DNA of 64,000 nucleotides, taken from sequence record NC_023610.1. One strand, given 5' to 3'. The notes under the pieces are model-generated. The model saw only the letters and a list, made by a program, of their open reading frames with translations. It made no database searches and was not told the DNA's origin. Numbering within the stretch: the stretch's first letter is position 1; each line of letters opens with the position of its first letter. The position numbers were made by a program, and so were the translations under genes. Shown piece after piece: positions 31,818 through 64,000 of this stretch.

Positions 31818-33638
31818 TTACACGCGGGAGATTAGCGTAGAGCCTTGTTTGGTGATGGTGATTTCACCGCTCATGCTCCAGTTGGTTCCACGACCGGTAT
31901 CGTTGTAGACCTTGATGTAGTTCCAGCGACCAACCCCAACAGCTGGCAGGTTGAATGGACCCACGTTCACGGTACCGGAGTTACGTCCGTTGTTACCGGT
32001 ATCTTTGTACATCACCTGCGCATCACCAATACCGTCACCGCCACTGTAGACGTAGAAGTATTGACGTTCACCGGAACCGCAGTACACGTTCAGACCAGAA
32101 AGCGTACGCGCGAAGTTTGCACCCGGAATACGGTAGATGGCCGTTGGTGTACGGATAGCTCCGCCCTGAGACCAACCAGGGAGCGTCTGGTTACCCGTCT
32201 GCCCCTCTGCTTCGTTCATCATGCGCGTCACCAGCAGTGAACCACCACGTGGTGTCAGGTAACGGTCAGAAGCCGTACCTGCTTGCGCTTCCGCATCGTT
32301 AGCCGTCAGGAAGTTATTGACGTTACCCAACCCAACCTGAGCTTTCGTCACGTTGTGTGGGTTGTCCTGACGGTTGGCGTGGGCGTTAATCAGTGGCACT
32401 GCCAGCACGTTAATCGCTTGTGCAGTACGCAGCGGTGTCATGTACGTGGCATTGTCCGCCCCGACTTGTGCCTGCGACTGACTGGCAATCCCGTAGTTCT
32501 GCACTGCACCCAAACCAACTTGTGCCGCCGTCACGCCGTGTGGGTTAGAGCGGTTGTTGATGTGGGCGTTCAACGGAATCAACGCCTGTTTCGAAACAGC
32601 CTGGGCTGTACGAAGAGGCGTCATGTACAGGACGTTACTGGTTCCGTTCTCAGCATCAAGCTGGGTGGCAATCCCGTAGTTCTCAACGGAGCCTAACCCG
32701 ACTTGCGCTTTGGTTGTCGCATGGGGGTTGTTCTTATCGTTGATGTGGGCTTGAATCACCGGGGTGATGTTGAGCGCGGTGTACTTGGCGATTTCCTGCC
32801 AGGTAGTCAGTGGCGTCATGTACAACGTAGACGAGGTGCCCGCTTCCGCTTCCGCCTGAGTAGCAGGACGGTAGTTTTCCACAATCCCTAAGCCAACCTG
32901 CGCCTTGGTGGTATTGTGGGGGTTGTTCTTGTCTGCGATGTGGGCGTTGAGGTTCGCTTCCACTTGCGCCAGGTGTTGCTCAATAGCCAGGCAACGAGCA
33001 TCCAGGCGATTGACGTTGGCGTACAGGTCAGCATCCACTGCATCGAGCCGTGCCACTTCATCCAACATCTGCTGACGAACACGGTTGATGTATTCGTAGA
33101 TAACGTTGTGCGAAGCGACGTCACCCTGAATCACCGCCCGCGTCAACTCTTCCAGCGCCAGCACCACGTACTCCAGGGAGTACAGGTCAGTGGCAGCATG
33201 TAAGTGCTTGCTCGGGTTGAAGGTCAGCGGTTTACCCCAGATGTTACCCCAGGAGACCACACGGTCGTCCTGCATCAAATCGTTCATCATTTTCACGATG
33301 GCGTCGATGCTGTAGGAGTAAGGTCCGCCCACAACCTGATACGTCAGCAACACGGTATCGTAGTCGCGGTTCACCAGGTTCAGGATGTTGTACACCGGTA
33401 AACCCAGGTTCTGGGTGGCTTCAACGTACGGGTAAATCAGGGTGTAGTCGGTACCGAGGTCGAGTTTCTTCCCACTGGCTTTGTCAGTAACGACCATGGA
33501 GTCGCCGTAGAACGGACCACCAAAGGGCTGAAACGCTCGGTTAAACTGTTTATCGACGGTGCGCTCTTCACCGATTACTCGGTTAGCCGCACTCTGCCCC
33601 GTTCTGTCCAACGGGTACTTGGGTTTGGTTAAGGCCAT
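31818..33638 (-). CDS. Tail fibre protein (phiKZ gp146-like) with NPH-x-x-T-x-AQVGL repeats
   Basis: MALTKPKYPLDRTG start; at least 4 repeats of ~55 aa (H...NPH.VTKAQVGLG.VENY..AT...A..G....YMTPL.T). Confidence 0.8.
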   Translation of the reverse strand: MALTKPKYPLDRTGQSAANRVIGEERTVDKQFNRAFQPFGGPFYGDSMVVTDKASGKKLDLGTDYTLIYPYVEATQNLGLPVYNILNLVNRDYDTVLLTYQVVGGPYSYSIDAIVKMMNDLMQDDRVVSWGNIWGKPLTFNPSKHLHAATDLYSLEYVVLALEELTRAVIQGDVASHNVIYEYINRVRQQMLDEVARLDAVDADLYANVNRLDARCLAIEQHLAQVEANLNAHIADKNNPHNTTKAQVGLGIVENYRPATQAEAEAGTSSTLYMTPLTTWQEIAKYTALNITPVIQAHINDKNNPHATTKAQVGLGSVENYGIATQLDAENGTSNVLYMTPLRTAQAVSKQALIPLNAHINNRSNPHGVTAAQVGLGAVQNYGIASQSQAQVGADNATYMTPLRTAQAINVLAVPLINAHANRQDNPHNVTKAQVGLGNVNNFLTANDAEAQAGTASDRYLTPRGGSLLVTRMMNEAEGQTGNQTLPGWSQGGAIRTPTAIYRIPGANFARTLSGLNVYCGSGERQYFYVYSGGDGIGDAQVMYKDTGNNGRNSGTVNVGPFNLPAVGVGRWNYIKVYNDTGRGTNWSMSGEITITKQGSTLISRV

Positions 33639-33701
33639 CGTAAGGCTCCCTTTGGGGTTACTTCAAGCGAATATAAAGCGGGTCAGTCTATAAAATGAGA
33701 C

Positions 33702-34796
33702 TTACGGCGGAGTGATGTTCGACAAGACACCGTCTTCCTTGGTGAAGTAGAGTTGCTTGTCCACGGTGGAACTGAACAGGCGACCCTGCGGCATCTCCAT
33801 GACGGCCTTTGGGTTACCCGCAGCATACTTGACCCAGGCACGGTTTTCGTACTTCCAGGTGGAGTTGTCACGGGCGTCGATAATCGGTTTATTGCTACCC
33901 GGTGACTGGAACACCTTGAAGGTAGCCTGTGGCTGACTGAATGCAATGTAACCAATCTTTGCCGGTTGCTGGAAGCGTTTCAGGTCAGCGCTGGTCAATG
34001 GGATGACCAAGGAGTTGGCTTCGCTGTACACAGTCGGTGAACCCACGTCAGAGGCCCAGATTTTAATCTGCGTTGCCGTACGTTCCACCTTCAGTCGCAC
34101 AGGTCCTGCTGTACCCCAACTTCCCTTCCCGCCGTTGGTGGTAATCCCTTCCGCAGGAATCACTGAACCATCCGCATGGTGCAGGGTACCGGTCACGCCA
34201 CCGATGTACTTCATGGTACCGGTCGGACTCGCCGGGTTCATTACCACGTACACCGGGTCAATACGGTAACTGGCGTCATGGGGGACAACCGTGGAGAAAG
34301 TGCGGTACACCATCAACGACATCGGGACACCGTTCTCTTCCAGATACGCCAGGCACAGACCGATAGCATCGTCATCCCCATCTGCACTGGACAATTCGAC
34401 TTCAAAGATGTAGCTGTCGTATTTGTCAGGCGACAAGAAGCCGGTGGTGTACACGGAGTTCACGGTGCAGACAATCGCATCGTTCGCTGAGTCGTAGTTC
34501 CACGCAGCGGCTTCGGTCGGGTCCGTCATCTTGTTGGTCCCGTTCAGTGAGATGCGCTCCCACTGGTTGAACACGGTTCCAAAGCTGGCACTCTTTTGGT
34601 CGTTAAGTTGAGCATCCGTGTTGACGATAGGATAAAAGTTTACCAGTGGTCCGGAAACTACGCTCGGCGTACCGTCCTCAACTTTGCTGAACAACGCATC
34701 ACCCTTACTCCAGTTAGGGCGGTCAAGGAGGTCGTAAATACCGGTATTCACCAACACCTTAAATTGCTGGTAAAATTCCCGCAAACTAATTTTCAT
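33702..34796 (-). CDS. Tail-fibre-associated protein with lectin/TSP-C-like beta domain
   Basis: WNYDSANDAIVCTVNS...GFLSPDKYDSYIFEVELSSADGDDDAIGL motif; located in the fibre cluster. Confidence 0.6.
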   Translation of the reverse strand: MKISLREFYQQFKVLVNTGIYDLLDRPNWSKGDALFSKVEDGTPSVVSGPLVNFYPIVNTDAQLNDQKSASFGTVFNQWERISLNGTNKMTDPTEAAAWNYDSANDAIVCTVNSVYTTGFLSPDKYDSYIFEVELSSADGDDDAIGLCLAYLEENGVPMSLMVYRTFSTVVPHDASYRIDPVYVVMNPASPTGTMKYIGGVTGTLHHADGSVIPAEGITTNGGKGSWGTAGPVRLKVERTATQIKIWASDVGSPTVYSEANSLVIPLTSADLKRFQQPAKIGYIAFSQPQATFKVFQSPGSNKPIIDARDNSTWKYENRAWVKYAAGNPKAVMEMPQGRLFSSTVDKQLYFTKEDGVLSNITPP

Positions 34797-34840
34797 CGCA
34801 ACACCCTTCTAAATTGGTCTCCGTCCGTGGAGAAGAGTCC

Positions 34841-37522
34841 TTAAGGGAAGGTCCAGTTTAAAGCGCCGGTGGTTGTCGGGTTACCGCTCGAGGCCGGGAT
34901 GGCGAACGGAGCCTTATCAAACGACAAGGAGAAGCCGTCAATCCCTACCACTTTAAAGACTGTTACACTGACGACGTGCGTCGTGTCCGTGGCGACAGTC
35001 CCTACGAGTAATCGGTTCCGGTCAGCGCTTTGTGGACCGTTGGTGACCAGGTAGTCAAACTGTCCATCGGTCAACTGAACGTAAATGTAAAAGGTTTTGT
35101 TACTGGGGTCAGCTATTACGCTGGTCAGGTTGACGGTTTTCTTCGGCGCACGACCTTTGATACCCGCAATCTGGCAATATACCTCTTCTGAGAAGTATAC
35201 GTTCCAGCTCCCCTTCACTGCCTGCGTTGCAATTACCTTGGCTTTGGTGGTTGGCCCTGACAACACACTCGTCTTGGTTCGTCCGTACGACATCACCGTC
35301 AGGGTGGTTTGTACGAATAAACTGTCGACACTGGTGTTCATCGCCACCACCCCTAACGAGGAGGGGAGAGCAAAGAGTTCGTCTTGGTTCGCGTACCCAT
35401 GACCTTGGTAATCTCGAATGGCGAACATCGCACCATCGCTGTCATTGAATCCCACCGCCTGCGTCGGATGTCCAGAGTTACCCGGATAACTGGCGGAGAA
35501 TGGAATCGACCCGCCCACAAAGGTGTAGTCGGTTTGTTCAGCAATGGTCATCCCGATACCACCGGCTCCCACGTTCACCACGGAGATAACACCCGTCGCG
35601 ACTTGTGCAGACAATCGTTTTTGAGTAATCGACACCGCAGACAACGTCCCGCCCGACCATCCGGTTTTATCCCCCATTGTCAGGAAACTAAAACCTGCCC
35701 CATCGCCCATGATAATCAAAGTCAGTGATACGAACTTGTTGGCCAACTTCTTCGTCAGAATGCGCGGGATGGCGACCACCGTGTGCATACTGCGAATTGT
35801 CCCTACCCCGCCCAACTCAGCGCGTGCAGATGCTTCAATTGCATCGAAGACCGCTGCCGTCACTGTAGTATCATTCGTCCCTATCCCGTATTGGTCAAGG
35901 TTAGAAGACCCACTGGGTGCGTCGCGGGTAAACGTATTGGACAACCGGACATTAAAGTTGACATCAATCTCTGTTAACATCCGGGAAGTTTCCATCCCCC
36001 CGGTCGCTTCCCTCCCCGTGTCCAATGCCCACGTCGAGGTGGTGCCGTCCGGGTAGTTGAACACCGTGGTATCGTTGTAGTTGATACCGGTGATGTTCGC
36101 CTGCCCGCCATCGAAAGAGACGCGGAGTTTATCCTTCGCTAGCACTTTCGGGATACGGATACTCACCGTCAGGGGCGTAGGGTAGTTACCTTTATACGCA
36201 TACGGCGGTTTCCCACTGAAGTTACGTTGTTTCGGGTCCAACCACACCGCATCAGGAACCACCCCAAGGTACTGTTGTTGGGAAGTCCCGTAGACCACAG
36301 AGTTGGTTTGTGTCAACACTTCTTTCGTGCGCGGACAGCGGCCAAACGACGGTCTGACGTTACCCAGCCCCGAAAGACCGTACTTAACTGTATCCGGGTA
36401 AGAAGCCAAACCATTGATAACGATGCTGTTGGCGTTGGTGTCACCTACCGCTTGTGTCGGACCCAACGAGTTGGGTTGCCAGGTAAAGGTCTTCGTTATC
36501 AGGTTAACATCCACTTGACGGCTGACCTGAACACGGATGGAAGCACCGCTCGCCAAACTCACCCATTGTTCATGGACGAAGAAAAGACGATACGTATCAC
36601 CCGACAAGAATGTGGCGTGGATACTCGGCGGCTGAATCATCGGCGCGGTTGCTGGGAGGTTATCCGTCCATTCGAAATAGACCGAGTCATTCCCTAAACC
36701 AGGTACCCCAGTGGTGTAGTACTTTGACACCGCAATCGCATCCCAGCTGTTGAACTGGTTGCCGTGAATGTCTTTACCCGTCCAACCTAAGAGTTGGGTT
36801 GCAGCACTTGCTGGGTTACCCGTGTACGTTTCCATTTTATCCACCACGATAGACAAGGCTACACCTTGCGTGTCGTTGAGGTTGTAATGGAAATGGTAGA
36901 GACTACCCTTGTGCGCCAGTACGCAAGAAAGGCTCGGGGTCCAGGTGCTACCGATAATCCCTTTCAGTCCGGTCGCGTGGGCAGCCGGGTCCAGTGTCCC
37001 CGTACGCTCACTGACCGCAAAGAAAGAACGGTTGTTTACACTATCCCTGACCAGTAACGCCACCTGTGTCTCCAGACCGTTTATCACGGCGATAGGACGT
37101 TGGGTGTCTGGTAGGTACGACGGTTGCCAGATGTTCGCTAACGGACTGTATCCTTCGACATTCCCTAACGCATTGACATTGTACTTGCAGAGGTAAACCC
37201 CGTACTGCGAACCGTCACATCCTGCCCGGAGATAGTTACGTGACCCGTCTGCTTCGACGTTGTACGCAATCCCCGGGTTGTAAGTCGCCGCCCCTTCGTA
37301 CTTCACCGAGATATTTGGCGGGATGAACCCCAGGTCGCCGAACTGGGACAACGGAAGGTCACCAGAACCTGCTATCAGGGCGAGTTTCGCATCCACCTGG
37401 TCTTTGGTGTACGTCCCGACTTGTTCGGTGGTAACCTCGTTTGGGTTTGCCCCGTCATCAATGGCCTGCTGGTAATCGGTCACCGATTTGATGGTCTCAC
37501 CAACACTCACCGATTTTACCAT
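34841..37522 (-). CDS. Large tail fibre / receptor-binding protein
   Basis: 893 aa, beta-rich; N-terminal NPNEVTTEQVGTYTK...LPLSQFG anchor module. Confidence 0.65.
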   Translation of the reverse strand: MVKSVSVGETIKSVTDYQQAIDDGANPNEVTTEQVGTYTKDQVDAKLALIAGSGDLPLSQFGDLGFIPPNISVKYEGAATYNPGIAYNVEADGSRNYLRAGCDGSQYGVYLCKYNVNALGNVEGYSPLANIWQPSYLPDTQRPIAVINGLETQVALLVRDSVNNRSFFAVSERTGTLDPAAHATGLKGIIGSTWTPSLSCVLAHKGSLYHFHYNLNDTQGVALSIVVDKMETYTGNPASAATQLLGWTGKDIHGNQFNSWDAIAVSKYYTTGVPGLGNDSVYFEWTDNLPATAPMIQPPSIHATFLSGDTYRLFFVHEQWVSLASGASIRVQVSRQVDVNLITKTFTWQPNSLGPTQAVGDTNANSIVINGLASYPDTVKYGLSGLGNVRPSFGRCPRTKEVLTQTNSVVYGTSQQQYLGVVPDAVWLDPKQRNFSGKPPYAYKGNYPTPLTVSIRIPKVLAKDKLRVSFDGGQANITGINYNDTTVFNYPDGTTSTWALDTGREATGGMETSRMLTEIDVNFNVRLSNTFTRDAPSGSSNLDQYGIGTNDTTVTAAVFDAIEASARAELGGVGTIRSMHTVVAIPRILTKKLANKFVSLTLIIMGDGAGFSFLTMGDKTGWSGGTLSAVSITQKRLSAQVATGVISVVNVGAGGIGMTIAEQTDYTFVGGSIPFSASYPGNSGHPTQAVGFNDSDGAMFAIRDYQGHGYANQDELFALPSSLGVVAMNTSVDSLFVQTTLTVMSYGRTKTSVLSGPTTKAKVIATQAVKGSWNVYFSEEVYCQIAGIKGRAPKKTVNLTSVIADPSNKTFYIYVQLTDGQFDYLVTNGPQSADRNRLLVGTVATDTTHVVSVTVFKVVGIDGFSLSFDKAPFAIPASSGNPTTTGALNWTFP

Positions 37523-38070
37523 GACGTATTCCCCGCACTGTTCGAAACAGGGATGGCGTTCCCGCGGCGGGTGTTAGACAGACGCTTACCGCCAATCTGG
37601 ATGACTGGAGTAAAATCGGTCAACGTTGCACTGGTACCTGTCCCCACTGCTTTACCGAGATACATCAACGTATTCGACTCAGCCTGTTCAGTCGCACTGA
37701 CCACGTAGGTCAACGCCCCCACATCTGCCTTCAGGTAAATGAAGTTCGTTGCCCCGGAGGTTTTGGTGATAGTCAGGGTACTGACCGGAAGAACCACACG
37801 GATACCCGCCAACAAGGAAGGAACGGCAGTGTTAATCTTCAGCCCTGCGCTATCGACCGCCACGGAAATGGCGAAGGTGTCGGATTGTCCCCAGTAAGAA
37901 ATGGGAACGTCACTCAACTGGAGTTTGGCGGCGAGCAGAGAATCAATTTCGGTTTTGGTGTACGCATTGATTTGAGCGGCAGTAACGTTGGTCGGGTTAT
38001 TGGTGTTATTAACGAATTGAGTAACAAAATCTAATACGGGCTTGAGTACCGCTCTGAGAGATACTTTCAT
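37516..38070 (-). CDS. Small tail-fibre-associated virion protein
   Basis: NPTNVTAAQINAYTK...DVPISYWG module shared with 34841..37522. Confidence 0.65.
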   Translation of the reverse strand: MKVSLRAVLKPVLDFVTQFVNNTNNPTNVTAAQINAYTKTEIDSLLAAKLQLSDVPISYWGQSDTFAISVAVDSAGLKINTAVPSLLAGIRVVLPVSTLTITKTSGATNFIYLKADVGALTYVVSATEQAESNTLMYLGKAVGTGTSATLTDFTPVIQIGGKRLSNTRRGNAIPVSNSAGNTSW

Positions 38071-38096
38071 GTTACACCCTTTATGGTTTAATCAGA

Positions 38097-38126
38097 ATAA
38101 AGAGAGGGGACGAATCCCCTCTTCTT
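38097..38126 (-). terminator. Intrinsic terminator
   Basis: AGAAGAGGGGA-TTCG-TCCCCTCTCT-TTTATT. Confidence 0.75.
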
Positions 38127-38132
38127 AGATTA

Positions 38133-40709
38133 CTACGCGGTGGTACCATCGTCGTACTTGATATCACCGTTGACGGTCAGGTCGCGGTCGACTGTACCGG
38201 TCAGCGCCAGAGATACGCCGTAACCATTGCTGGTCGCTTTGATTTCCGTGCTGTCTGCGATACCGAAGGTCGGCGACGCCATCAGCATCACACGCTCAGT
38301 GCTCAGTGCCATGAAGACTTCGTTCGTGTACTCGTTAAAGTAGAAACGGGATTTACGAAGCGGGCCCTCGAAGCCTGCCACATTGGTCCAAGCACCTTTG
38401 GCGTAACTGTAGGTCTTCGCCCCAACAACGTCAGTGAAGACGAAGTTCAGGCTCGGCCAGTTATCCGGTTTGAAGGTGACATCAGCCAGGTCAGTGGTTG
38501 GGGTCAGTAAGCCAGCACCGAAGACGTATGCCAGGTCAGTCAACGTCAGACCCGTTTCGGTCAGGATGTTGGTCAACGGATACGTTGCGGTGAAGATTTG
38601 CGTAGTCCCGTTCTTCAGGATAATCTGAAGGTTAACGCCACGGGTGATTTTCGCGCTGTAGGTCAGGGTTGCTCCTGCGGCGGCACTTAACGCAGTTTCT
38701 GCTTTCGCATCCACCAACGTCCCTTGGCTGTCCAGGTACACTTCCGTCACGCCGGTGGTACGAATACGCGCCGCCATGAAGTTGTCTTCCATGTTACCGG
38801 ACCCGGTATCCACCTGGTAGTACACTAACGGTAAGTACACCGCAATGCCCGCACGCATGGTGAATGTCCCGGTAAAGGTCAGGACGGACGGTAAGACGTC
38901 GTACTCGTTGTCCGTGAACTGCCACGCCAGGGTTGGGGTACCGGTGTTGTTCCCTTTGGTCACGAGACCCAAACGAGACGCAGTCCAGTCGCCTTCCACA
39001 GTGGAGTCAGCCAGCAGGCCTTCAAACGGGGCACGGGTGATGATGTCGTTCACCCAACCGGTGTTCGCCGTCAAGTGATAACCATCAACCAACAGCGTAT
39101 CCAGCAAAGCACCCGCCGTTGATGGAATCATGTACTTGTCTGGCGCACCATTCAGTACATCCGTTTCCGACGCTGCCGCGTAGTTCTGTACCTGACCCAA
39201 CCCAATCGAGTCTTTGGTTACAGGTTCAGCACCCGCTGCAATCATGTCGTGCACGGGACCGTTCAGGAAGATACGCAGGTCAGCCGCAGAGACGTATTTG
39301 TCGTCTGCTGTCATCGCCAGAATATCAGCGTCTTCTGCCATACCGTAGTTCTGAACATTGCCGAGGCCGACCTGTGCTTTGGTCGTGTTATGCGGGTTGT
39401 TGTAATCCGCGATGTGCGCAGCAATACCATCGCTACCGGTGGCTTTCAGAATCTGGTTCACCAGGTAAGCGGTCATCAGCTTATCGGTGGCCGTCCCTGC
39501 AATGGCTTCCTGTAGCGTTGCCACCCCGTAGTTTGGCACGTTACCTAAACCTACCTGGTCTTTGGTGACCTGGTGCGGGTTACTGAAGTCCAACAAGTGT
39601 GCGGAGAGACCCTGACCCGAACCGTTGGAGATAGCTTGCGCTACCAGGTACGGAGACATAAAGGTGGTGGTACTGGTTCCCGAAATCGCTTCGGCCAATG
39701 TCGCCATCGCATAGTTCGGTACGCTACCCAGACCCACTTGCGCCTTCGTGACGTTATGCGGGTTGTTGGTGTTCCCGGTGTGCGACGCCAGCGCCAACGG
39801 AGCCAATACGTCAATGGCCGCTTTAGTCAGTGCAGGTGTCATGAAGCGGTTGGTTGCTACACCCGCTTGTGCCTCCACAACGGTCGCCGTCTGGTAGTTG
39901 TCAACTGACCCTAAACCAACCTGGGCTTTCGTTGTACCGTGCGGGTTGTCCGTCCGATTCGCGTGCGCATTAATCATCGGAACAATGAACTTGTTAGTGA
40001 AGTCCATCACACGCAATGACGTCATGTACTTGACGTTGTCAGTACCGGTCTCGGCTTCTTCTTTACTGGCCGGAACCAGGTTACCCAGGTCATCAATGCC
40101 CAAGTCAGCCAAGGTAATGTGGTGCGGGTTGGCGTGGTCAGCAATGTGCTCAAGGAGAGCCTGAAGCGCTTTGTTGTACCCGGCTTCCTGTGCGTCAATC
40201 AAGTCATACAGGCGAGCCACCACTTCATTCATCCCGACCATGTCGTCCACATTGTGACGATGCGGTACCGGTGGTAACTCATCCGGGATGTCCACTACCG
40301 CAGCCCAGGTCACGGTGCGCGGGTCAAGCTGTTTGTTGGCCAGCAGCGTCGTAATCTGGTTGATATCCAGAACGAACTCGCCACCCAGCGTCTGATAATC
40401 AATTTCGACTATCAGGTTTGCCTGCGGGTCGTTCATGACGATAGCACCGTAAATAGGTTGCATCGCCCCCGACAGAATCATCTGGTCAAAACGGAAACCG
40501 AAGTAATAGTCGTACCCTGGACGTAACGGCAACTGGGTTGCGGCATTCCGTAGCACGAAACCACGTCGGTGAAACGGTCCCTTGGTAGGGATAAAGAAGT
40601 TCGTCTGACCGTTGCCCACAGGCGTAATGGTATGACGCTCCTTAGTAATCTTGTTGTTCGTATTCGTCCCGTATGGGTCAAACTCGAACTCGTACGCTTT
40701 CGTTACCAT
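38133..40709 (-). CDS. Tail fibre protein (phiKZ gp145-like) with NPH repeats
   Basis: MVTKAYEFEFDPYG start (RBS GAGG); about 5 NPH..TKAQVGL repeats. Confidence 0.8.
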   Translation of the reverse strand: MVTKAYEFEFDPYGTNTNNKITKERHTITPVGNGQTNFFIPTKGPFHRRGFVLRNAATQLPLRPGYDYYFGFRFDQMILSGAMQPIYGAIVMNDPQANLIVEIDYQTLGGEFVLDINQITTLLANKQLDPRTVTWAAVVDIPDELPPVPHRHNVDDMVGMNEVVARLYDLIDAQEAGYNKALQALLEHIADHANPHHITLADLGIDDLGNLVPASKEEAETGTDNVKYMTSLRVMDFTNKFIVPMINAHANRTDNPHGTTKAQVGLGSVDNYQTATVVEAQAGVATNRFMTPALTKAAIDVLAPLALASHTGNTNNPHNVTKAQVGLGSVPNYAMATLAEAISGTSTTTFMSPYLVAQAISNGSGQGLSAHLLDFSNPHQVTKDQVGLGNVPNYGVATLQEAIAGTATDKLMTAYLVNQILKATGSDGIAAHIADYNNPHNTTKAQVGLGNVQNYGMAEDADILAMTADDKYVSAADLRIFLNGPVHDMIAAGAEPVTKDSIGLGQVQNYAAASETDVLNGAPDKYMIPSTAGALLDTLLVDGYHLTANTGWVNDIITRAPFEGLLADSTVEGDWTASRLGLVTKGNNTGTPTLAWQFTDNEYDVLPSVLTFTGTFTMRAGIAVYLPLVYYQVDTGSGNMEDNFMAARIRTTGVTEVYLDSQGTLVDAKAETALSAAAGATLTYSAKITRGVNLQIILKNGTTQIFTATYPLTNILTETGLTLTDLAYVFGAGLLTPTTDLADVTFKPDNWPSLNFVFTDVVGAKTYSYAKGAWTNVAGFEGPLRKSRFYFNEYTNEVFMALSTERVMLMASPTFGIADSTEIKATSNGYGVSLALTGTVDRDLTVNGDIKYDDGTTA

Positions 40710-40785
40710 GGAAAAAGTTCCTCGAGGTTTATTCACCCGGCCGGATGGGTAGACATAGAATTTAACCGTTTTCAGGAGTTAGCTC

Positions 40786-42039
40786 ATGCTACGTGTGATT
40801 TCCGCCCAAGTTATAGCCGCCGGGACATCTGGCGGGTGGCAAACCGCCAACTTGGCGGACGTGCCGATGTTTCAATCGTTTAAGCGCTACTCGGCCGCTA
40901 TCGTACGGGTGTACGACACCGTAGCCGATACCAACGGCTACCTCGACCTTTATTCTCTCCCGGTGGTGACCCGCAGTTCAGCCATGACCCTGAAGGCCTA
41001 CCTGGAGATTGCGGTAGGGTTAATCGTCTTAACCGACAGTCCCGTTACCCGCTCAACGACTCCCCGTGTGGCGTCCTATTACGCCGGGGCATACGGCTAC
41101 GCACTGAAAGGGTTCAACAACAACTTCCACCCGGATACCGAATTGCTTCCGGACCAGAAGATTGACTTGTTGGTCTACCATAATGATATCAGTGATTATC
41201 GACGCCTCCAGGCGAATGCGCTCTTTGCAGTCAACGGGTTGTTCCACAAGTCTGACTACACCGAAGACGGTATCGTGTTGTTTGACGGTGGCCGTACAGT
41301 CACCAAAGGGAACGACAACCGAGTAACGGTACTGGACTTCTCGTCATTGGGTGGGGTAACGCTGCTACCGATTACCAACGAGATGATTCGTTCCACCAAG
41401 GACACCATCGGTCTTGAAGACAGCCTGTACATTGACCTCCCGGAAACGCTGGAAGGGAAAACCCTGTTCGTGGTTATCGGCGGGATGCTGTATCCCCTGA
41501 ACTCATCATTCGACATGGTGAGCTCCACTCGGGTCCGGTTGACTCTGAAACACTACGACCTGGTTGAGTGGTTCATCGACAACTATACCCTGATGGATTT
41601 ATCGGCACTGCCAATGACCATGGACGTTAATGACCCGGCCAAGTTCGTGGAAGGGGAGTTCCACACCGATGCGTTTGTGCGTGCTGTACTGACCATGAGC
41701 CAAACGTTCTTTGTGGTTATCCCGACGACGGGTATCACCGTGGAGAAGGTTCGCCTTGGTGAGACTGACCAACCGGGTTTATACCGTGCACCTAACGACG
41801 CTGACCCCGACGTCCCGGTGATGATTGGCAACGGGTATGTGGTGGCGTACAACGTCAGTTACCAATGGGGGTTCAATGCCCTGGCGGTACCGAACAACCA
41901 GATGTTCAACCGCATCTGGAAAACAACAACCAAGGAAGACAACCTCGGTACGAACTACCAACTGTTGCGTGACCAGAACGAGACTAACCGTCCGCTCAAA
42001 CGTCCCGCAGCGCATTTGCTCTACATCAGCAAACCGTAA
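40786..42039 (+). CDS. Virion structural protein
   Basis: 417 aa; RBS AGGAG; conserved LFAVNGLFH motif of phiKZ-like virion proteins. Confidence 0.6.
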   Translation: MLRVISAQVIAAGTSGGWQTANLADVPMFQSFKRYSAAIVRVYDTVADTNGYLDLYSLPVVTRSSAMTLKAYLEIAVGLIVLTDSPVTRSTTPRVASYYAGAYGYALKGFNNNFHPDTELLPDQKIDLLVYHNDISDYRRLQANALFAVNGLFHKSDYTEDGIVLFDGGRTVTKGNDNRVTVLDFSSLGGVTLLPITNEMIRSTKDTIGLEDSLYIDLPETLEGKTLFVVIGGMLYPLNSSFDMVSSTRVRLTLKHYDLVEWFIDNYTLMDLSALPMTMDVNDPAKFVEGEFHTDAFVRAVLTMSQTFFVVIPTTGITVEKVRLGETDQPGLYRAPNDADPDVPVMIGNGYVVAYNVSYQWGFNALAVPNNQMFNRIWKTTTKEDNLGTNYQLLRDQNETNRPLKRPAAHLLYISKP

Positions 42040-42048
42040 GGTGTAACC

Positions 42049-42633
42049 ATGTTCGAAAAACTGGAAGCGGCTGTCGGCAGTAAAGTGTTGTACGGGGTCA
42101 TCTGGATTGCGACCCTGACCTTCACGTACTGGTTCGGCGGACACATTGAAAAAGAGAAGACCACGGCGGTCGACTCGGCGGTCTCGAGTGTCTCCACGCA
42201 ATTGGGGACTATCCTGACCAATCAAATTAACACGCAGGTCGGTGGGATAAACGCCAGACTGCTTGGAGATACCAATGCGATTAACCTCATTCTTCAAGGT
42301 GGCTTCAAAAACAATGACGATGCTGATGCTCGTCTGCATAACCTCACTAATGCTGGGGTGTACGTCAAAGCCAGTCCTGGTACCCCAGGCGAAACCAAAG
42401 CCGCTGGTACTGCCGCCGCTGGACCCGGCAATAATGCAACCTATCGAGCCCAACTTTCAGACCAGGCTCGAGACTTTTTTGCAGGCGAAGCTAAACGCGC
42501 CAACCAATGTGCCGTTCAACTCAAAGGCGCTCAAGATACCCTCTTGAGTTGGCAGCGCGCTGTTGATGAGTACAACCGAACTGTTGCTGACCCCAATGGT
42601 TACGACCGCGTTCAACTACCCGATAAAAAATAA
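42049..42633 (+). CDS. Rz: Inner-membrane spanin (Rz-like)
   Basis: N-terminal transmembrane segment; NDDADARLHNL...GVYVKA...LSDQARDFF...A.RAN.CA.QL pattern typical of Rz. Confidence 0.75.
   Translation: MFEKLEAAVGSKVLYGVIWIATLTFTYWFGGHIEKEKTTAVDSAVSSVSTQLGTILTNQINTQVGGINARLLGDTNAINLILQGGFKNNDDADARLHNLTNAGVYVKASPGTPGETKAAGTAAAGPGNNATYRAQLSDQARDFFAGEAKRANQCAVQLKGAQDTLLSWQRAVDEYNRTVADPNGYDRVQLPDKK
42275..42547 (+). CDS. Rz1: Outer-membrane lipoprotein spanin (Rz1-like), embedded in Rz in the +1 frame
   Basis: RBS GGAG 6 nt before the ATG; lipobox LMLG-C; Pro-rich LVLPPLDPAIMQP. Confidence 0.8.
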   Translation: MRLTSFFKVASKTMTMLMLVCITSLMLGCTSKPVLVPQAKPKPLVLPPLDPAIMQPIEPNFQTRLETFLQAKLNAPTNVPFNSKALKIPS

Positions 42634-42676
42634 AAAAAGAACCTCCTGAGGACCCGAAGGTCCTCAGGGGTTTTAT
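42630..42676. terminator. Bidirectional terminator
   Basis: CCTCCTGAGGACC-CGAA-GGTCCTCAGGGG flanked by A- and T-runs. Confidence 0.85.
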
Positions 42677-43380
42677 GCTGCGATGGGAAAGGAAGGTGTG
42701 AAGTTGGCGCTATACCTTGCTTTGCGATAGCAGGCAAATTCCGGGATATAAAGGTTGGAAGCAGTACCATCGCCAATCTGAAAGATGGTTGACGCCGCAA
42801 TGTTGGTCAACGAGTCCCGTTCAGTCAGACTGTAATCGCTCCCCGTGAATACTGCTAACCCTTGCTTCACCCCATTCAGGTAGACGGAGATTTTCCCGTT
42901 ACGTCGCTGCATGACGAAATGTATCCAGCGATTAGTTCCGGTTGCTCGCGTTGTACTGGTTGAGTAGTTCGAGTTACCTATATCAGGTTGGGTTGAAACC
43001 TGTAACCGGTTACCGTACCCGTTATCCCCAAAGCGCATGATTAACCCGCCCCAACTGGATGTATTCGGGCGTTGGTACATCAAAGTCGTATAACCATTAC
43101 TGGTCTGGGTACAATAGAAAGGAAATTCAATCGTGAAATCCCCGGTCCCTACATCCATTGACGTCAATGGGATGATGGGGAACTGTTTGGTTCCCGTGAA
43201 CAGTGCCTTGCTGTACCCCGAAAGGGCTACCGGTGGTGTGACCACATCACTAGCAACCAGGTTAGTGAGACTGATAACCTGTTTCCCGGTCGATAGTCCT
43301 TTCTCGAAATTATAACCGATATAGGGCTGCTCGCCCGGAACAAATCCGTTCTTCTTACCGAGGAGTATGGCTTCTAACAT
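42673..43380 (-). CDS. Virion protein with LamG/ConA-like domain
   Basis: GTGDFTIEF, WIHFVMQRRNGKISVYLNGV and RKARYSANFTP motifs; N-terminal MLEAILLGKK. Confidence 0.75.
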   Translation of the reverse strand: MLEAILLGKKNGFVPGEQPYIGYNFEKGLSTGKQVISLTNLVASDVVTPPVALSGYSKALFTGTKQFPIIPLTSMDVGTGDFTIEFPFYCTQTSNGYTTLMYQRPNTSSWGGLIMRFGDNGYGNRLQVSTQPDIGNSNYSTSTTRATGTNRWIHFVMQRRNGKISVYLNGVKQGLAVFTGSDYSLTERDSLTNIAASTIFQIGDGTASNLYIPEFACYRKARYSANFTPSFPIAA

Positions 43381-43390
43381 GGTCTACCCC

Positions 43391-44140
43391 TTAAGGAATG
43401 ATTTCCAAAACAGGACGCCAACCTAAATAGGCCTGAACGTCAGTGATAACAGGTGCACCCACTGTCCAGATGCTACTCCAGACGGTTGCAGCACGGGCTA
43501 GGCTGTCGTTGGCATTGACCTGCTCACGACACAACTGTAATCCGCCGGGTGTAGTGGTACCACCAATCAACATCAGGTCATTGACCGGGTCGTACGTTTC
43601 CCACTTCGGACCTTCCTGCGCAGAAACAGTAGTGGAGACAATATTGGGAATCAACCGCATCCAATCCGACCCCAACATCTCCGTTCGGTTAGTGTAGTTC
43701 CCGTTATAAGGGAGTTTACCCAGACCGGGTTGCAGGACGTTCCACAACATGACCTTGTACGTAACCCCGTTCAATACGATGGTCCGTAACTGGTTACGCG
43801 GCGTTCCGTTGTTGAACAGCCCGTTGTCGTTTGACCCCCAGACTAAACCCGAAGAGTAAAGCGCACTCCACCCGTAAGCAGAGGTGATGGGTTTCTTCGG
43901 TGTATAGAGGAGGCGACCGTCAATCCCGAATTTCAACCACGGGATGGTTGTGTTGATAGCCGACCCCACATTGCCCCCGAGTGCTCGCAATGCGGCTACT
44001 GAGGGCATAGCGCTGTTCGCCACCTCTCCGTAGAACTCCGTAAAACGCGCACTGTTGTTGGGGTCGACGTATCGCCCAATGGGCGTGGTCGCTCCGGGGT
44101 ATCTACCGCTTTTCTTCCCAGCTAACAAAAGTTCTTGCAT
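43391..44140 (-). CDS. Virion structural protein (phiKZ gp131-family-like)
   Basis: MQELLLAGKK start; FYGEV, WLKFGIDGRLLYTPKKP, LYSSGLVWG, YKVML and GWRPVLE motifs. Confidence 0.7.
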   Translation of the reverse strand: MQELLLAGKKSGRYPGATTPIGRYVDPNNSARFTEFYGEVANSAMPSVAALRALGGNVGSAINTTIPWLKFGIDGRLLYTPKKPITSAYGWSALYSSGLVWGSNDNGLFNNGTPRNQLRTIVLNGVTYKVMLWNVLQPGLGKLPYNGNYTNRTEMLGSDWMRLIPNIVSTTVSAQEGPKWETYDPVNDLMLIGGTTTPGGLQLCREQVNANDSLARAATVWSSIWTVGAPVITDVQAYLGWRPVLEIIP

Positions 44141-44153
44141 GGTTTCATCCTCG

Positions 44154-44924
44154 TTACGCGCTGGGGTAAAGGGTTGCCGTGTCCGCAGTGAACCCGGTGG
44201 TCGGGAACAGTGCCCCGGCACGCAGTCGGTAACGTTCTACCATCCCCCTGACATCGGGACTGTTAGCCACAGACTGCGACATGATACCGACCTGTTGGTT
44301 ACCCGTTGGAGTCAGAATCGTGTACGTCAACGTGTCAATCAACACCCCGTTACAGAAGAAGTAAACCTTGCCGCCAGAGTACATGACTGCAATGTGTTTC
44401 CAGTCGGTGCCGTAGAATGCATCGTTCTGTTTCGTTCCGTTGATTCTGGGCGCAGCCTGATTGTTCCAAATCCCAACCAAGCGGGCGGTGTTGGCGTACC
44501 CCAAGGTACACTGCAACCGGTTGGTCCAGTAGCCGTTTACCGTGAGGTCGGGATAAACAATCAGGGGGATTAACGGTTGGTGTTTGTTAACCGGGGAAAG
44601 GACGTCCAAGTCCCGTTTCCAATAATCCACTGTCCAGGCACTGGTCACAAATCCTGGTGCAATAGTCCCGGGTGGAGTGGCGACAGAACCATGTCCCATT
44701 TCCACACCCTTTCCGTATTGAAAACTTTCGGCACCCAATGAAGGTAATAGTGGGGGCACTGCTGCACCGGCGGTTGGGATAACACTGGTGACCTTCAAAG
44801 TTTTTCCGGTGTAATCGACAAAACCAGTGTCCCTGAAGATACTCGAGTCCCACGCCAACATCTCAGTGCCCAATGCCCACGCTGCGGACGGTTTCCTTCT
44901 TCCCATCAAGAGCGCTTCAATCAT
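44154..44924 (-). CDS. Virion protein with LamG/ConA-like domain
   Basis: MIEALLMGRRK start; AWTVDYW and WKHIAVMYSGGKVYFFCNG motifs. Confidence 0.7.
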   Translation of the reverse strand: MIEALLMGRRKPSAAWALGTEMLAWDSSIFRDTGFVDYTGKTLKVTSVIPTAGAAVPPLLPSLGAESFQYGKGVEMGHGSVATPPGTIAPGFVTSAWTVDYWKRDLDVLSPVNKHQPLIPLIVYPDLTVNGYWTNRLQCTLGYANTARLVGIWNNQAAPRINGTKQNDAFYGTDWKHIAVMYSGGKVYFFCNGVLIDTLTYTILTPTGNQQVGIMSQSVANSPDVRGMVERYRLRAGALFPTTGFTADTATLYPSA

Positions 44925-44933
44925 ACCTCCCCC

Positions 44934-45713
44934 TTATACGTCGTCTGCATTTTCAGGGAATGCGCGCGTGTCACCCCACATGATTCTTACGCCACCCACA
45001 CCTGCCCCGGCATACGCACGGGCGTTGTCACTCGAACGACGAGCCACTCCTGCGGATACACCACACCGAGTACCTTTGACCAATGTCCCATACAGCTGTG
45101 AGCCTATCCCGTTGTTCCCGCCACTGATGTTCACGCCGTTGACGGTGTTACTGGTCATGGTACCAGCCTTACCCGCGGTCGTGTCGGTCGGAGTTGCCCC
45201 TGCTGTAGTACCACCGCCGTCTCCGTAGTACCCGCCCGTACCGGACCCCGGCGCACCTTGGGTACTACTGGTTGCAATCCTTACACCACCATCCCCGCCA
45301 CCGGCTCCCAGAGAGTTGGCCACCATTGCATCTTTGGTTGCCCGCCCGCCAGACGCTTTCAAAAGCACGGTGGAACCGCGGAGGATACTGGTGTCCTTAC
45401 CGTCTACCCAACCAATCCCACCGGTTGTATACCCAAGGTTACTGGTTCCCGCCCCGACAATGATGGTCAGTGTTTCACCGGGGGTAACTGAAATCGCATT
45501 GTTGTAACGCAGGGAGCCACCGACCCCACCAACGGTCGTGGTCACGCCGTCAAAGGTTCCGTACGCTCCATGCGCCCCTGCACCAATAGCCACTGCGCTG
45601 ATACTCTTTACGCCGTCGGGTACAACCCAGTTAAAGGTTCCGGCGGCAACCCACATCGCCTGGCTAGGAAGAACCTCGACTTTCTTCTTCCCACCCATCA
45701 CCATTTCTAACAT
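44934..45713 (-). CDS. Glycine-rich virion/tail-tip protein
   Basis: MLEMVMGGKKK start; GTFNWVVPDGVKSISAVAIGAG, VTPGETLTIIVG and GGVRIMW glycine-rich-domain motifs. Confidence 0.7.
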   Translation of the reverse strand: MLEMVMGGKKKVEVLPSQAMWVAAGTFNWVVPDGVKSISAVAIGAGAHGAYGTFDGVTTTVGGVGGSLRYNNAISVTPGETLTIIVGAGTSNLGYTTGGIGWVDGKDTSILRGSTVLLKASGGRATKDAMVANSLGAGGGDGGVRIATSSTQGAPGSGTGGYYGDGGGTTAGATPTDTTAGKAGTMTSNTVNGVNISGGNNGIGSQLYGTLVKGTRCGVSAGVARRSSDNARAYAGAGVGGVRIMWGDTRAFPENADDV

Positions 45714-45775
45714 ACGCGCCTCGAAGCATAAAAGAATGACAGCGCTACCCGAAGGTAACGCCGCCATTGTTAGCG

Positions 45776-47605: not shown

Positions 47606-47645
47606 ACAAAAAATAAAAGCGGGGGACTGTCCCCCCGTCTTTTTA
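47606..47645 (-). terminator. Intrinsic terminator
   Basis: GACGGGGGAC-A-GTCCCCCGCT hairpin followed by a T-run. Confidence 0.6.
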
Positions 47646-47993
47646 GTAGAACGGTTTACATACCGCAATGAAAAGGATGTCTTTTACCTTTTCGGTTTCA
47701 GGCAGCTGGTCGTACGGCACGAGGTTAGGGTGTTTCTTCCCTTCTCTGTCGTAGTCACCGTGCTCCCACCCTTGTTCCATCATCCAGGTCGACCACTGTT
47801 TGTGGGCATCCGCTGGACTGGAGAGTTTGGAATCAATGGCGTTGGCTACCGCGTGGATGTAATGCTCTTTATCGTCCTGTGACAGGGTGTTCCATTCCGG
47901 GCGGGTTTCGTTACCGACTTCTTTGGTCCAGACGTTGTTCACGGCATGGGCCTGCTCAGCAATTTTTGCCAAGATTTGAATTGGTGGCTTCAT
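47643..47993 (-). CDS. Stand-alone RyR-domain protein
   Basis: WNTLSQDDK...H..W......GWEHG.YD...K.HPNLVPYDQLPETEKVKD matches the RyR repeat. Confidence 0.85.
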   Translation of the reverse strand: MKPPIQILAKIAEQAHAVNNVWTKEVGNETRPEWNTLSQDDKEHYIHAVANAIDSKLSSPADAHKQWSTWMMEQGWEHGDYDREGKKHPNLVPYDQLPETEKVKDILFIAVCKPFY

Positions 47994-48592
47994 TCGGGTT
48001 GCTCATCGTCTGGGAGGCTGGGGTAACGGTAGCCAGCGAGCGTAGGGTAGATAATCGCTTCACTGAGGTCGTTGTTCGGCGGCGTAAAGCCATCGAGGTC
48101 GGTGGTCTTAATCGCTGTGTTCAGGTGCGGAACGCCGTCCCAGAGACCGATGTCAAGAATCCCGTGCCAACCGAGCGAGTCATCGGCGAATATCGCCGTG
48201 AGGTTCCCTCTTCCATCAATAAGATGGACGGTTTGCGTAAAAAGCGAGGAGTCTTCAAAGTCGGTAGCCAGGTACTGCGGTAACCCGTATTGGATACAGA
48301 AACGCTTGAGGACGGCCGCAACCGTTTCCCCTTCACGAACCTGCACCATGGGAGTAATCCCTTTGAACAAAAGCGAGAATTCCACCCGGTGGTATTCGAA
48401 ATCGCGGTAGCTGAAGAACCGGTTGGTCAAGTCACGGACCCAGATGGTGTTGTTGTCCGTCTGGGAATCGTAAGACTTGTACTCGATAGACAACTCAGAG
48501 GGAGCCCAGTTAGGTCCCTCAGGATTTGCCGCCTTAATCAACCGGACCAGCTCGTCACGAATAACCCCCGTTTGCGTCAGGTTATCCATCAC
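47990..48592 (-). CDS. Virion structural protein with two C-terminal L..AI....L.GF..P motifs
   Basis: HLNTAIKTTDLDGFTPP and DLSEAIIYPTLAGYRYP. Confidence 0.7.
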   Translation of the reverse strand: MMDNLTQTGVIRDELVRLIKAANPEGPNWAPSELSIEYKSYDSQTDNNTIWVRDLTNRFFSYRDFEYHRVEFSLLFKGITPMVQVREGETVAAVLKRFCIQYGLPQYLATDFEDSSLFTQTVHLIDGRGNLTAIFADDSLGWHGILDIGLWDGVPHLNTAIKTTDLDGFTPPNNDLSEAIIYPTLAGYRYPSLPDDEQPE

Positions 48593-61950: not shown

Positions 61951-62012
61951 TCAACTACGGCACTCTACACTGTCGCCGGAGGGTCTCGCCAACCAACCCT
62001 CGATGGGGCGTA

Positions 62013-62072
62013 TCACGGTTTAGTGAAACCGTTCAACTGTGGGTTGACGATAGCCTGGCTGAGTGGAGTTCA
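62013..62072 (-). other. In-frame post-stop extension of the capsid gene (candidate UGA read-through segment)
   Basis: TGA-ACT CCA CTC AGC CAG GCT ATC GTC AAC CCA CAG TTG AAC GGT TTC ACT AAA CCG-TGA = *TPLSQAIVNPQLNGFTKP*. Confidence 0.65.
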
Positions 62073-64000
62073 AGGAGCTGGAGTAGCATCAGTGGTGGTG
62101 ATGTCGCCAGATACCTTAGCAATAGTGCTGTAGGTAGTACGTTCTGCGATTGCAGCTTCCAGGTTCAGCACGTCGATGACAATCATCAGCGGCAGGAAGT
62201 GGAAGTGACGGTAGCGAGGCGTCAGACGGATTTCGTTCGCGATACGCTGTTCACGAATCATCGCGAAGTTAACGATGTACTCTGGAATCATGCCCAGGAT
62301 GCCGTGGTCCAGCGGATGAATTTCGCTTTCACGTGGCAGGGTGAAGGTCATGATGACTTTGTCTTTCATACGCAGGTCAGAGATTGACGCTACGGTGAAG
62401 TCGAAGCCAATACCAGTGGTACGGTCGTCGCCCTGAATCATCAGGTAGTTCGGCAGACGTTTGTCAGTACCGATTGCAACGTGCGGTTTCGGGTTAGAGC
62501 CCGGGAACGCAGTTTCCAGCGCCGCAGAGTAACCGGTTTTCAGGTCAGCACGGTAGATAGCTTCCTGAATCACGGATACGAACAGACCCTGGATGTCTTC
62601 CACGCGGCCAGCAGAGTTGGTGCTGTTCAGTTCTGCCTGAACGTCCAGCTTGATGCGGCGGAAGTACGGACGAACGTAGTACTGACCCAGACCTTCCAGA
62701 CCCGGCTGAGATTCCAGCGGATGTGCAGTGTCCTGGCCCAGGTAACGTTCCAGGGTGTCAACGCGGTTCAGCAGGGTGGTAACACCCGCGTTACGCAGTT
62801 GCAGACGGTATGCGTTTTGCAGCGCTTCCATACGCGGATAGACTTTTTCGTCGTCAGTCAGCGCAGGTTTCATGATGCACAGCGGGCTCAGAGTTGGAAT
62901 CATGAAGCCGTGTTTCATCACGTCGGAGTCAATCAGCAGACCACGTTCCAGCTGGTTGATGTTGGTCAGGCGGCTTTCCAGGCTGTAACCAGCCGGAGAG
63001 AACGTGATACCAGCAATCAGCGGAGCCAGAGTTGCGTCGGACAGAGCCACTTCCTGACCCTGGGCGTTGAACGCTTTCGCGATACGCAGTTCAGGTGCAC
63101 GAGTGTCACCGTTACCGCTTTCAACGTTCATCTCACCGTCAACCTTGATGCTCAGGTGGATGGTGTAGCCAGCATCTTGCAGCGGCTTCAGGATAGCAGA
63201 AGCAGCTTTAGAGTGCAGCTTGGTGTCCGGGGTAATCGGCAGGCTGTCGTTGTGGAACTTAACAGTGGTCTGACGGAAGTTCATTTCGCGGGTAGCCAGG
63301 TACTGTGCGAAGTTAGAACGGTTCACGTCGAAGTCAACTGCTTCGTTCACGCCACCTTTGCTGACTTTAACAATCAGCTCACCCAGCGCGATACGGCTGT
63401 CCAGTGAATCGGTGTGGTTCGGCGTACCCTTCTGCATACGAGAAGGAGTCTGCGCCAGGTTGATGAGACTGAAGCTACCAACGTTGAACGCCAGGTAGTT
63501 AGTCTGGAACTCTTCACCAGACTGCTCAACAGTGGTCGGAGCAACCAGAGTTGGGTCGATGAAGTATTTTTCGTTTTTGCCGGATTGCAGGCACGGAATC
63601 AGGTCGGTAGTATCCGTTTCCAGGATTTCGTGGTTCAGCAGACCTTCCAGGATGTTACGCTTCTGGAAGTCGCCAGCATCACCAGACTGGTCAGGAGCTT
63701 TCCAACCGTCCCAGACTACGTTACGACGCACGGTCATGATGAAGCCCGCGTTGTCCGGAGTCAGGATTTGGGTTTTGTAGAACAGCTCGTTGAACTCGTG
63801 CTGTTTCGCCGCAGTCATCGCGATGGAGTAAGAGTGCTGACGCCATTCGTCAGTTACTTTCTCATCGAATGATTCCATTGCTGGAAGTGCGCGCGAAGGA
63901 ACAACAGGAATCGCACCGGCCGGGCCAGAAGTAATCTGCTCGTGGCGGATTACGTCGTCAGCTTTAAAGCCAGCACCGGTTTCACCGATATTGCTGTAGT
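62070..64000 (-). CDS. Major capsid protein (phiKZ gp120-like); 5' end lies beyond the window
   Basis: Frame is open to the window end; AME|SFDE prohead-protease-type site; QHEFNELFYKT, NQLERGLLID and PRYRHFHFLP motifs; extreme codon bias; strong terminator. Confidence 0.92.
   Translation of the reverse strand, partial: YSNIGETGAGFKADDVIRHEQITSGPAGAIPVVPSRALPAMESFDEKVTDEWRQHSYSIAMTAAKQHEFNELFYKTQILTPDNAGFIMTVRRNVVWDGWKAPDQSGDAGDFQKRNILEGLLNHEILETDTTDLIPCLQSGKNEKYFIDPTLVAPTTVEQSGEEFQTNYLAFNVGSFSLINLAQTPSRMQKGTPNHTDSLDSRIALGELIVKVSKGGVNEAVDFDVNRSNFAQYLATREMNFRQTTVKFHNDSLPITPDTKLHSKAASAILKPLQDAGYTIHLSIKVDGEMNVESGNGDTRAPELRIAKAFNAQGQEVALSDATLAPLIAGITFSPAGYSLESRLTNINQLERGLLIDSDVMKHGFMIPTLSPLCIMKPALTDDEKVYPRMEALQNAYRLQLRNAGVTTLLNRVDTLERYLGQDTAHPLESQPGLEGLGQYYVRPYFRRIKLDVQAELNSTNSAGRVEDIQGLFVSVIQEAIYRADLKTGYSAALETAFPGSNPKPHVAIGTDKRLPNYLMIQGDDRTTGIGFDFTVASISDLRMKDKVIMTFTLPRESEIHPLDHGILGMIPEYIVNFAMIREQRIANEIRLTPRYRHFHFLPLMIVIDVLNLEAAIAERTTYSTIAKVSGDITTTDATPAP

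Follow-up and report, generated by a model that had tools for sequence, protein, structure and literature searches.

The 64,000-nucleotide stretch analyzed here (the window) belongs to Erwinia phage PhiEaH1 (KF623294.1, Iapetusvirus), with window base 1 corresponding to record base 124001. At its end, on the minus strand (62070-64000), lies the gene for the major capsid protein of the phiKZ type, which matches PF25620 (E 1.5e-211), PHROG 3231 and, among solved structures, most closely PDB 8bfl (E 8e-220), as well as gp120 in 8y6v. The gene runs on past the window end; the record annotates 787 aa, whereas an ORF list of the window gives 602 aa from an internal ATG (62070-63878). The genome also encodes a tubulin-like protein, so this is a phiKZ-like jumbo phage of the nucleus-forming kind, as described for its relative PCH45 (bioRxiv 10.1101/782524). 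The capsid reading frame ends in ...DATPAP at a TGA (62072-62070, minus strand) followed by A. Eighteen in-frame sense codons follow, TPLSQAIVNPQLNGFTKP (62069-62016, minus strand), and then a second TGA (62015-62013, minus strand). An intrinsic terminator with a 10-bp G+C stem and a T run (61946-61923, or 61946-61913 as a whole, minus strand) lies 67 nt further on, ending the capsid transcript after the extension. Between this terminator and the next gene, the octamer TATATTAC (61873-61866, minus strand) is probably the core of a phage RNA-polymerase promoter; it occurs within 330 nt after the capsid stop in 22 of 40 loci from many genera, including phiKZ, and the FBKp24 record annotates a promoter at that place.

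This layout had prompted the proposal, in an initial annotation made from the sequence alone, that the first TGA is read through to give a minor capsid form with a docking tail. The first TGA is not a sequencing error, as phage vB_Ea277G and an IMG/VR contig, sequenced independently, are identical here. However, an open frame of this length is not beyond chance on its own, since 49% of 290 long ORFs in this genome have at least 18 open codons after their stop. The claim that most codons of the extension are those preferred in the capsid gene is only partly true; adaptation to capsid usage is 0.55 in frame 0, against 0.17 and 0.27 in the other frames, which places it in the lowest 6% of capsid windows. 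The small hairpins noted after the stop exist, but they sit inside a larger conserved predicted structure, and ACT CCA does occur on both sides of the stop. It is the comparison with relatives that puts the feature beyond chance.

Scans of viral and metagenome contigs added few loci, and most relatives were obtained by searching for contigs encoding related capsid proteins; these loci are designated here by L numbers. Among close relatives, capsid genes 92-97% identical to that of PhiEaH1 (L015, L016, L017) keep the TGA and all 18 codons with a few substitutions (pN/pS 0.3-0.8), whereas the sequence just past the second stop changes by substitutions and indels. Substitution counts within the PhiEaH1 clade are small. 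Over all 13 pairs compared, pN/pS is below 1. Relatives at 79-83% (L018, L037, L011, L019) have TGA followed by 42-45 in-frame codons. More widely, Moabitevirus (Totoro, Moabite, 2050HW), PCH45 and its relatives, SPLA10, and L029, L027, L031 and L032 have TGA followed by 16-55 in-frame codons, with lengths differing by whole codons. Twenty extension sequences from about 9 clades align from the first or second post-stop codon. In this alignment Leu is found in 19/20 sequences with five codons, Glu in 16 and Gln in 4, Phe in 16 and Ile in 4, Leu in 18/20 with six codons, Gly in 17/20 with all four codons, Phe in 20/20 with both codons, and Pro in 16/20 with four codons. This pattern means selection on a protein, not on an RNA. 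In contrast, the last 10-30 residues before the stop are variable and rich in Pro, Thr, Gly and Ala, like a linker.

The PhiEaH1 peptide is a diverged member of this family. Its similarity to the extensions of the other lineages is reached by 9/5000 (maximum score) and 1/5000 (summed score) shuffles, and it ranks first among the 290 post-stop peptides of its genome. Two profile HMMs of the 16-column core were built for scoring only. A profile built only from distant lineages did not pick out the PhiEaH1 peptide genome-wide (score 5.2, E 13), and a profile that included it was circular; its homology rests on position, on intermediate sequences and on the permutation test.

Other lineages reach the same peptide by different routes. 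In L028, TAG replaces TGA with the peptide still in frame. In L030 and L042, two contigs from different samples, the capsid genes end in TAA and frame 0 after the stop carries nothing similar, but the -1 frame reads ...KGLSELFNKPNLNGFGM... behind the canonical X_XXY_YYZ slippery heptamer C_CCA_AAG, two codons before the stop. The one nearby difference between the two contigs is synonymous in both frames. Three routes to one peptide are the strongest argument that it is made as a capsid extension, and the frameshift lineage is hard to explain otherwise.

The type of stop codon is also associated with the extension. Every TGA-ending capsid gene examined keeps an open in-frame post-stop peptide, over about 14 clades and down to about 25% identity. 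By clade, 14/14 TGA- or TAG-ending genes have an extension of at least 15 open codons, against 2/11 TAA-ending genes (Fisher p 3e-5, not corrected for phylogeny, and the clade counts are not phylogenetically independent). The two TAA exceptions are the -1 frameshift clade and Xoo-sp14, neither of which has the peptide in frame 0; it is likewise absent from frame 0 in the TAA-ending genes of the Klebsiella phages KpLz-2_45 and FBKp24, L012, L014, Eowyn, SPN3US, RAY, pVa-21 and RSF1. TGA ends only 25% of long PhiEaH1 ORFs, and the stop of the upstream neighbor gene varies among TAG, TAA and TGA across the same loci. A NJ tree places the extension in all major branches, with a single loss in the Klebsiella-phage clade. 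However, the base following the stop, A in PhiEaH1, is C, A or G in relatives, never T, and a C-terminal Pro, which the initial annotation had invoked as slowing termination, is not conserved.

Beyond the close family, Erwinia phage pEa_SNUABM_54 and E. coli phage Goslar have TGA plus a peptide of the same family (shuffles 2/2000 and 0/2000 for Goslar; 4/2000 for the summed score of pEa_SNUABM_54). phiKZ, 201phi2-1, PS119XW and D6 all end in TGA and share a second, different in-frame peptide of 26-28 codons with an internal two-fold repeat (L051 1365-1442, L052 1368-1451, L057 1368-1448, L058 1371-1454), with 4-8 identical residues per pair encoded by different codons. The post-UGA peptide of RP12 is not significantly similar to either family. 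No stop-less orthologue, with the peptide fused, was found among 191 capsid proteins (45 close and 146 representative), many of which end in long Gly/Thr-rich tails; this suggests that a fully extended capsid is selected against. Such Gly/Thr/Ala-rich low-complexity tails in distant phiKZ-type capsid proteins (e.g., our sequences P0060, P0087, P0104 and P0143) are the kind of linker seen before the stop in the extension-bearing lineages.

In the PhiEaH1 clade, RNAalifold predicts a long-range structure (61962-62069, minus strand) in which the bases directly after the first stop pair with a non-coding element beyond the second stop (about 61993-61962), enclosing the whole extension. This element is fully conserved among five sequences while its flanks diverge. 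Six pairs carry compensatory changes, and the alifold energy is -33.9 against -21.6 +/- 3.3 for column shuffles (z -3.8, 0/300). The structure explains the conserved non-coding block and could tune read-through, but only five sequences support it, and other clades show only a 5-bp hairpin that is confounded with codon conservation.

The initial annotation had also related the extension to a motif in three baseplate-region proteins. The pattern does occur three times in the six-frame translation of the window, but two of these are tandem copies (48020-48124, minus strand) at the C-end of one 200-aa tail-module virion protein (47990-48592, minus strand; Pfam DUF7941), and the peptide thus resembles repeats in one protein, not three. 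That gene does lie beside tail-fiber and baseplate-like genes, and a run of genes at 31818-45767 (minus strand) has tail-fiber, tail-collar-fiber and baseplate-wedge matches with repeated domains. The same kind of peptide is conserved in DUF7941 orthologues, and in Moabite, Totoro, FBKp24 and KpLz-2_45 the 382-aa orthologue carries about six tandem repeats of about 19 aa (L043 2474-3622, L044 2474-3619, L045 574-1719, L046 601-1749). In PhiEaH1, a separate 116-aa ORF with a RyR-domain match follows the 200-aa gene, overlapping by ATGA (47643-48592 for both, minus strand), where relatives have one 382-aa gene. AlphaFold modeling of the 200-aa protein was uninformative (mean pLDDT 44.9), and PDB searches with the DUF7941 proteins and their profile found nothing usable (best hit PHIKZ127, E 0.51). 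A binding partner shared by the capsid extension and these repeats is plausible, although the Klebsiella phages keep the repeats while lacking the capsid extension, so the link between the two is not obligatory.

Taken together, these data support a model (probability roughly 0.8) in which most ribosomes terminate at the UGA ending the capsid gene, while a small fraction probably decode it and add 19 residues before the second UGA, although translation of the extension and its function are inferred and not shown directly. No tRNA gene was found by ARAGORN in the whole PhiEaH1 genome, and the region has no SECIS or other Rfam match at E up to 1, apart from one chance lncRNA hit. Decoding by a host near-cognate tRNA is therefore the simplest route; tRNA-Trp is expected to read UGA at the percent level in enterobacteria, and UGA followed by C or A to be a weak terminator, although the UAG of one lineage would usually be read through less well. 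With about 1,615 capsid subunits per head in phiKp24 (PMC9700779), read-through of 1-5% would give an inferred 16-80 tagged subunits, each carrying the peptide on a Pro/Thr/Gly-rich linker. In solved relatives the capsid C-terminal arm lies at the capsomer center and, in phiKZ pentamers, touches the outer decoration protein gp244 (PMC9700779, PMC11297242), so an extension would most likely project outward; solved Goslar chains end at the annotated stop.

Alternative explanations appear unlikely. The post-stop stretch could be untranslated 3′ UTR conserved as an RNA or DNA element, with an incidental open frame, and both the frequency of equally long open frames in this genome and the overlapping conserved structure in the PhiEaH1 clade, which part of the nucleotide conservation could serve, are consistent with this. 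However, conserved residues are written with up to six synonymous codons, indels are whole codons, the other two frames are closed, the -1 frameshift variant keeps the same peptide, and other clades keep the peptide without the long-range structure. A separate small gene, giving a free 16-55-aa peptide by its own initiation or by re-initiation, is about equally improbable. In several lineages the stretch is close enough to the stop for termination-reinitiation, and CTG follows the stop directly in some of them, but no ATG, GTG or TTG precedes the conserved residues in PhiEaH1 or most relatives, the first conserved Leu sits 0-2 codons after the stop, and in L030 and L042 the peptide frame overlaps the capsid stop behind a slippery heptamer.

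A short hop, in which peptidyl-tRNA-Pro leaves CCU and lands on the CCA two codons after the stop so that no tRNA reads the UGA, could apply only to the PhiEaH1 clade, where CCT TGA ACT CCA (GCT CCA in L017) always provides a matching landing codon. This also seems doubtful, as other clades have no matching take-off and landing codons yet keep the extension, and the arrangement may simply encode the conserved Pro. Least likely is decoding by a dedicated factor; UGA is the selenocysteine codon and some large phages may carry suppressor tRNAs, but besides the absence of tRNA and SECIS matches described above, the capsid gene has no internal UGA.

Capsid extensions made by recoding are already known. 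In ssRNA phage Qbeta, a leaky UGA at the end of the coat gene gives a minor C-terminally extended protein (A1) that enters the virion, but the coat fold is unrelated and the read-through domain long, whereas the PhiEaH1 capsid protein is of the HK97 type and extensions here are 16-55 residues; no homology was tested or claimed. Gene 10A/10B of phages T7 and T3 and the major head proteins of Lactobacillus phage A2 and Listeria phage PSA (reviewed in PMC5009743) produce minor extended capsid subunits in tailed dsDNA phages, but by -1 or +1 frameshifting and in different capsid families, while PhiEaH1 and most relatives use an in-frame stop and only the L030/L042 lineage a -1 site. The coat-protein read-through domains of plant luteoviruses (PMC4422679) give a surface extension but are large and belong to eukaryotic RNA viruses, making this an analogy only. 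The G/GT tail assembly chaperone frameshift of tailed phages is likewise a recoding event conserved across very divergent phages in which a fixed low ratio of long to short product matters, although the gene and mechanism differ and the product is not part of the virion. Our literature searches found no paper describing stop-codon read-through in the capsid gene of a tailed dsDNA phage.

A broader and more tentative possibility, which we consider less likely than not, is that nucleus-forming jumbo phages as a family, including the models phiKZ, 201phi2-1, Goslar and PCH45, put a rare surface tag on their capsids by recoding the capsid stop codon. In this view the low copy number of the tag is essential, since no stop-less orthologue was found among the proteins checked, and the recoding route can be swapped between UGA, UAG and a -1 frameshift. 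The tag would act as an address for capsid trafficking or docking, or for contact with tail-module proteins that carry the same repeats. If capsid read-through is real, every annotated capsid gene of this large phage family lacks a product, and capsid structures and virion proteomes of model jumbo phages would contain an unmodeled minor subunit. The tag is also a concrete candidate for the unknown contacts that move and dock capsids in nucleus-forming phages.
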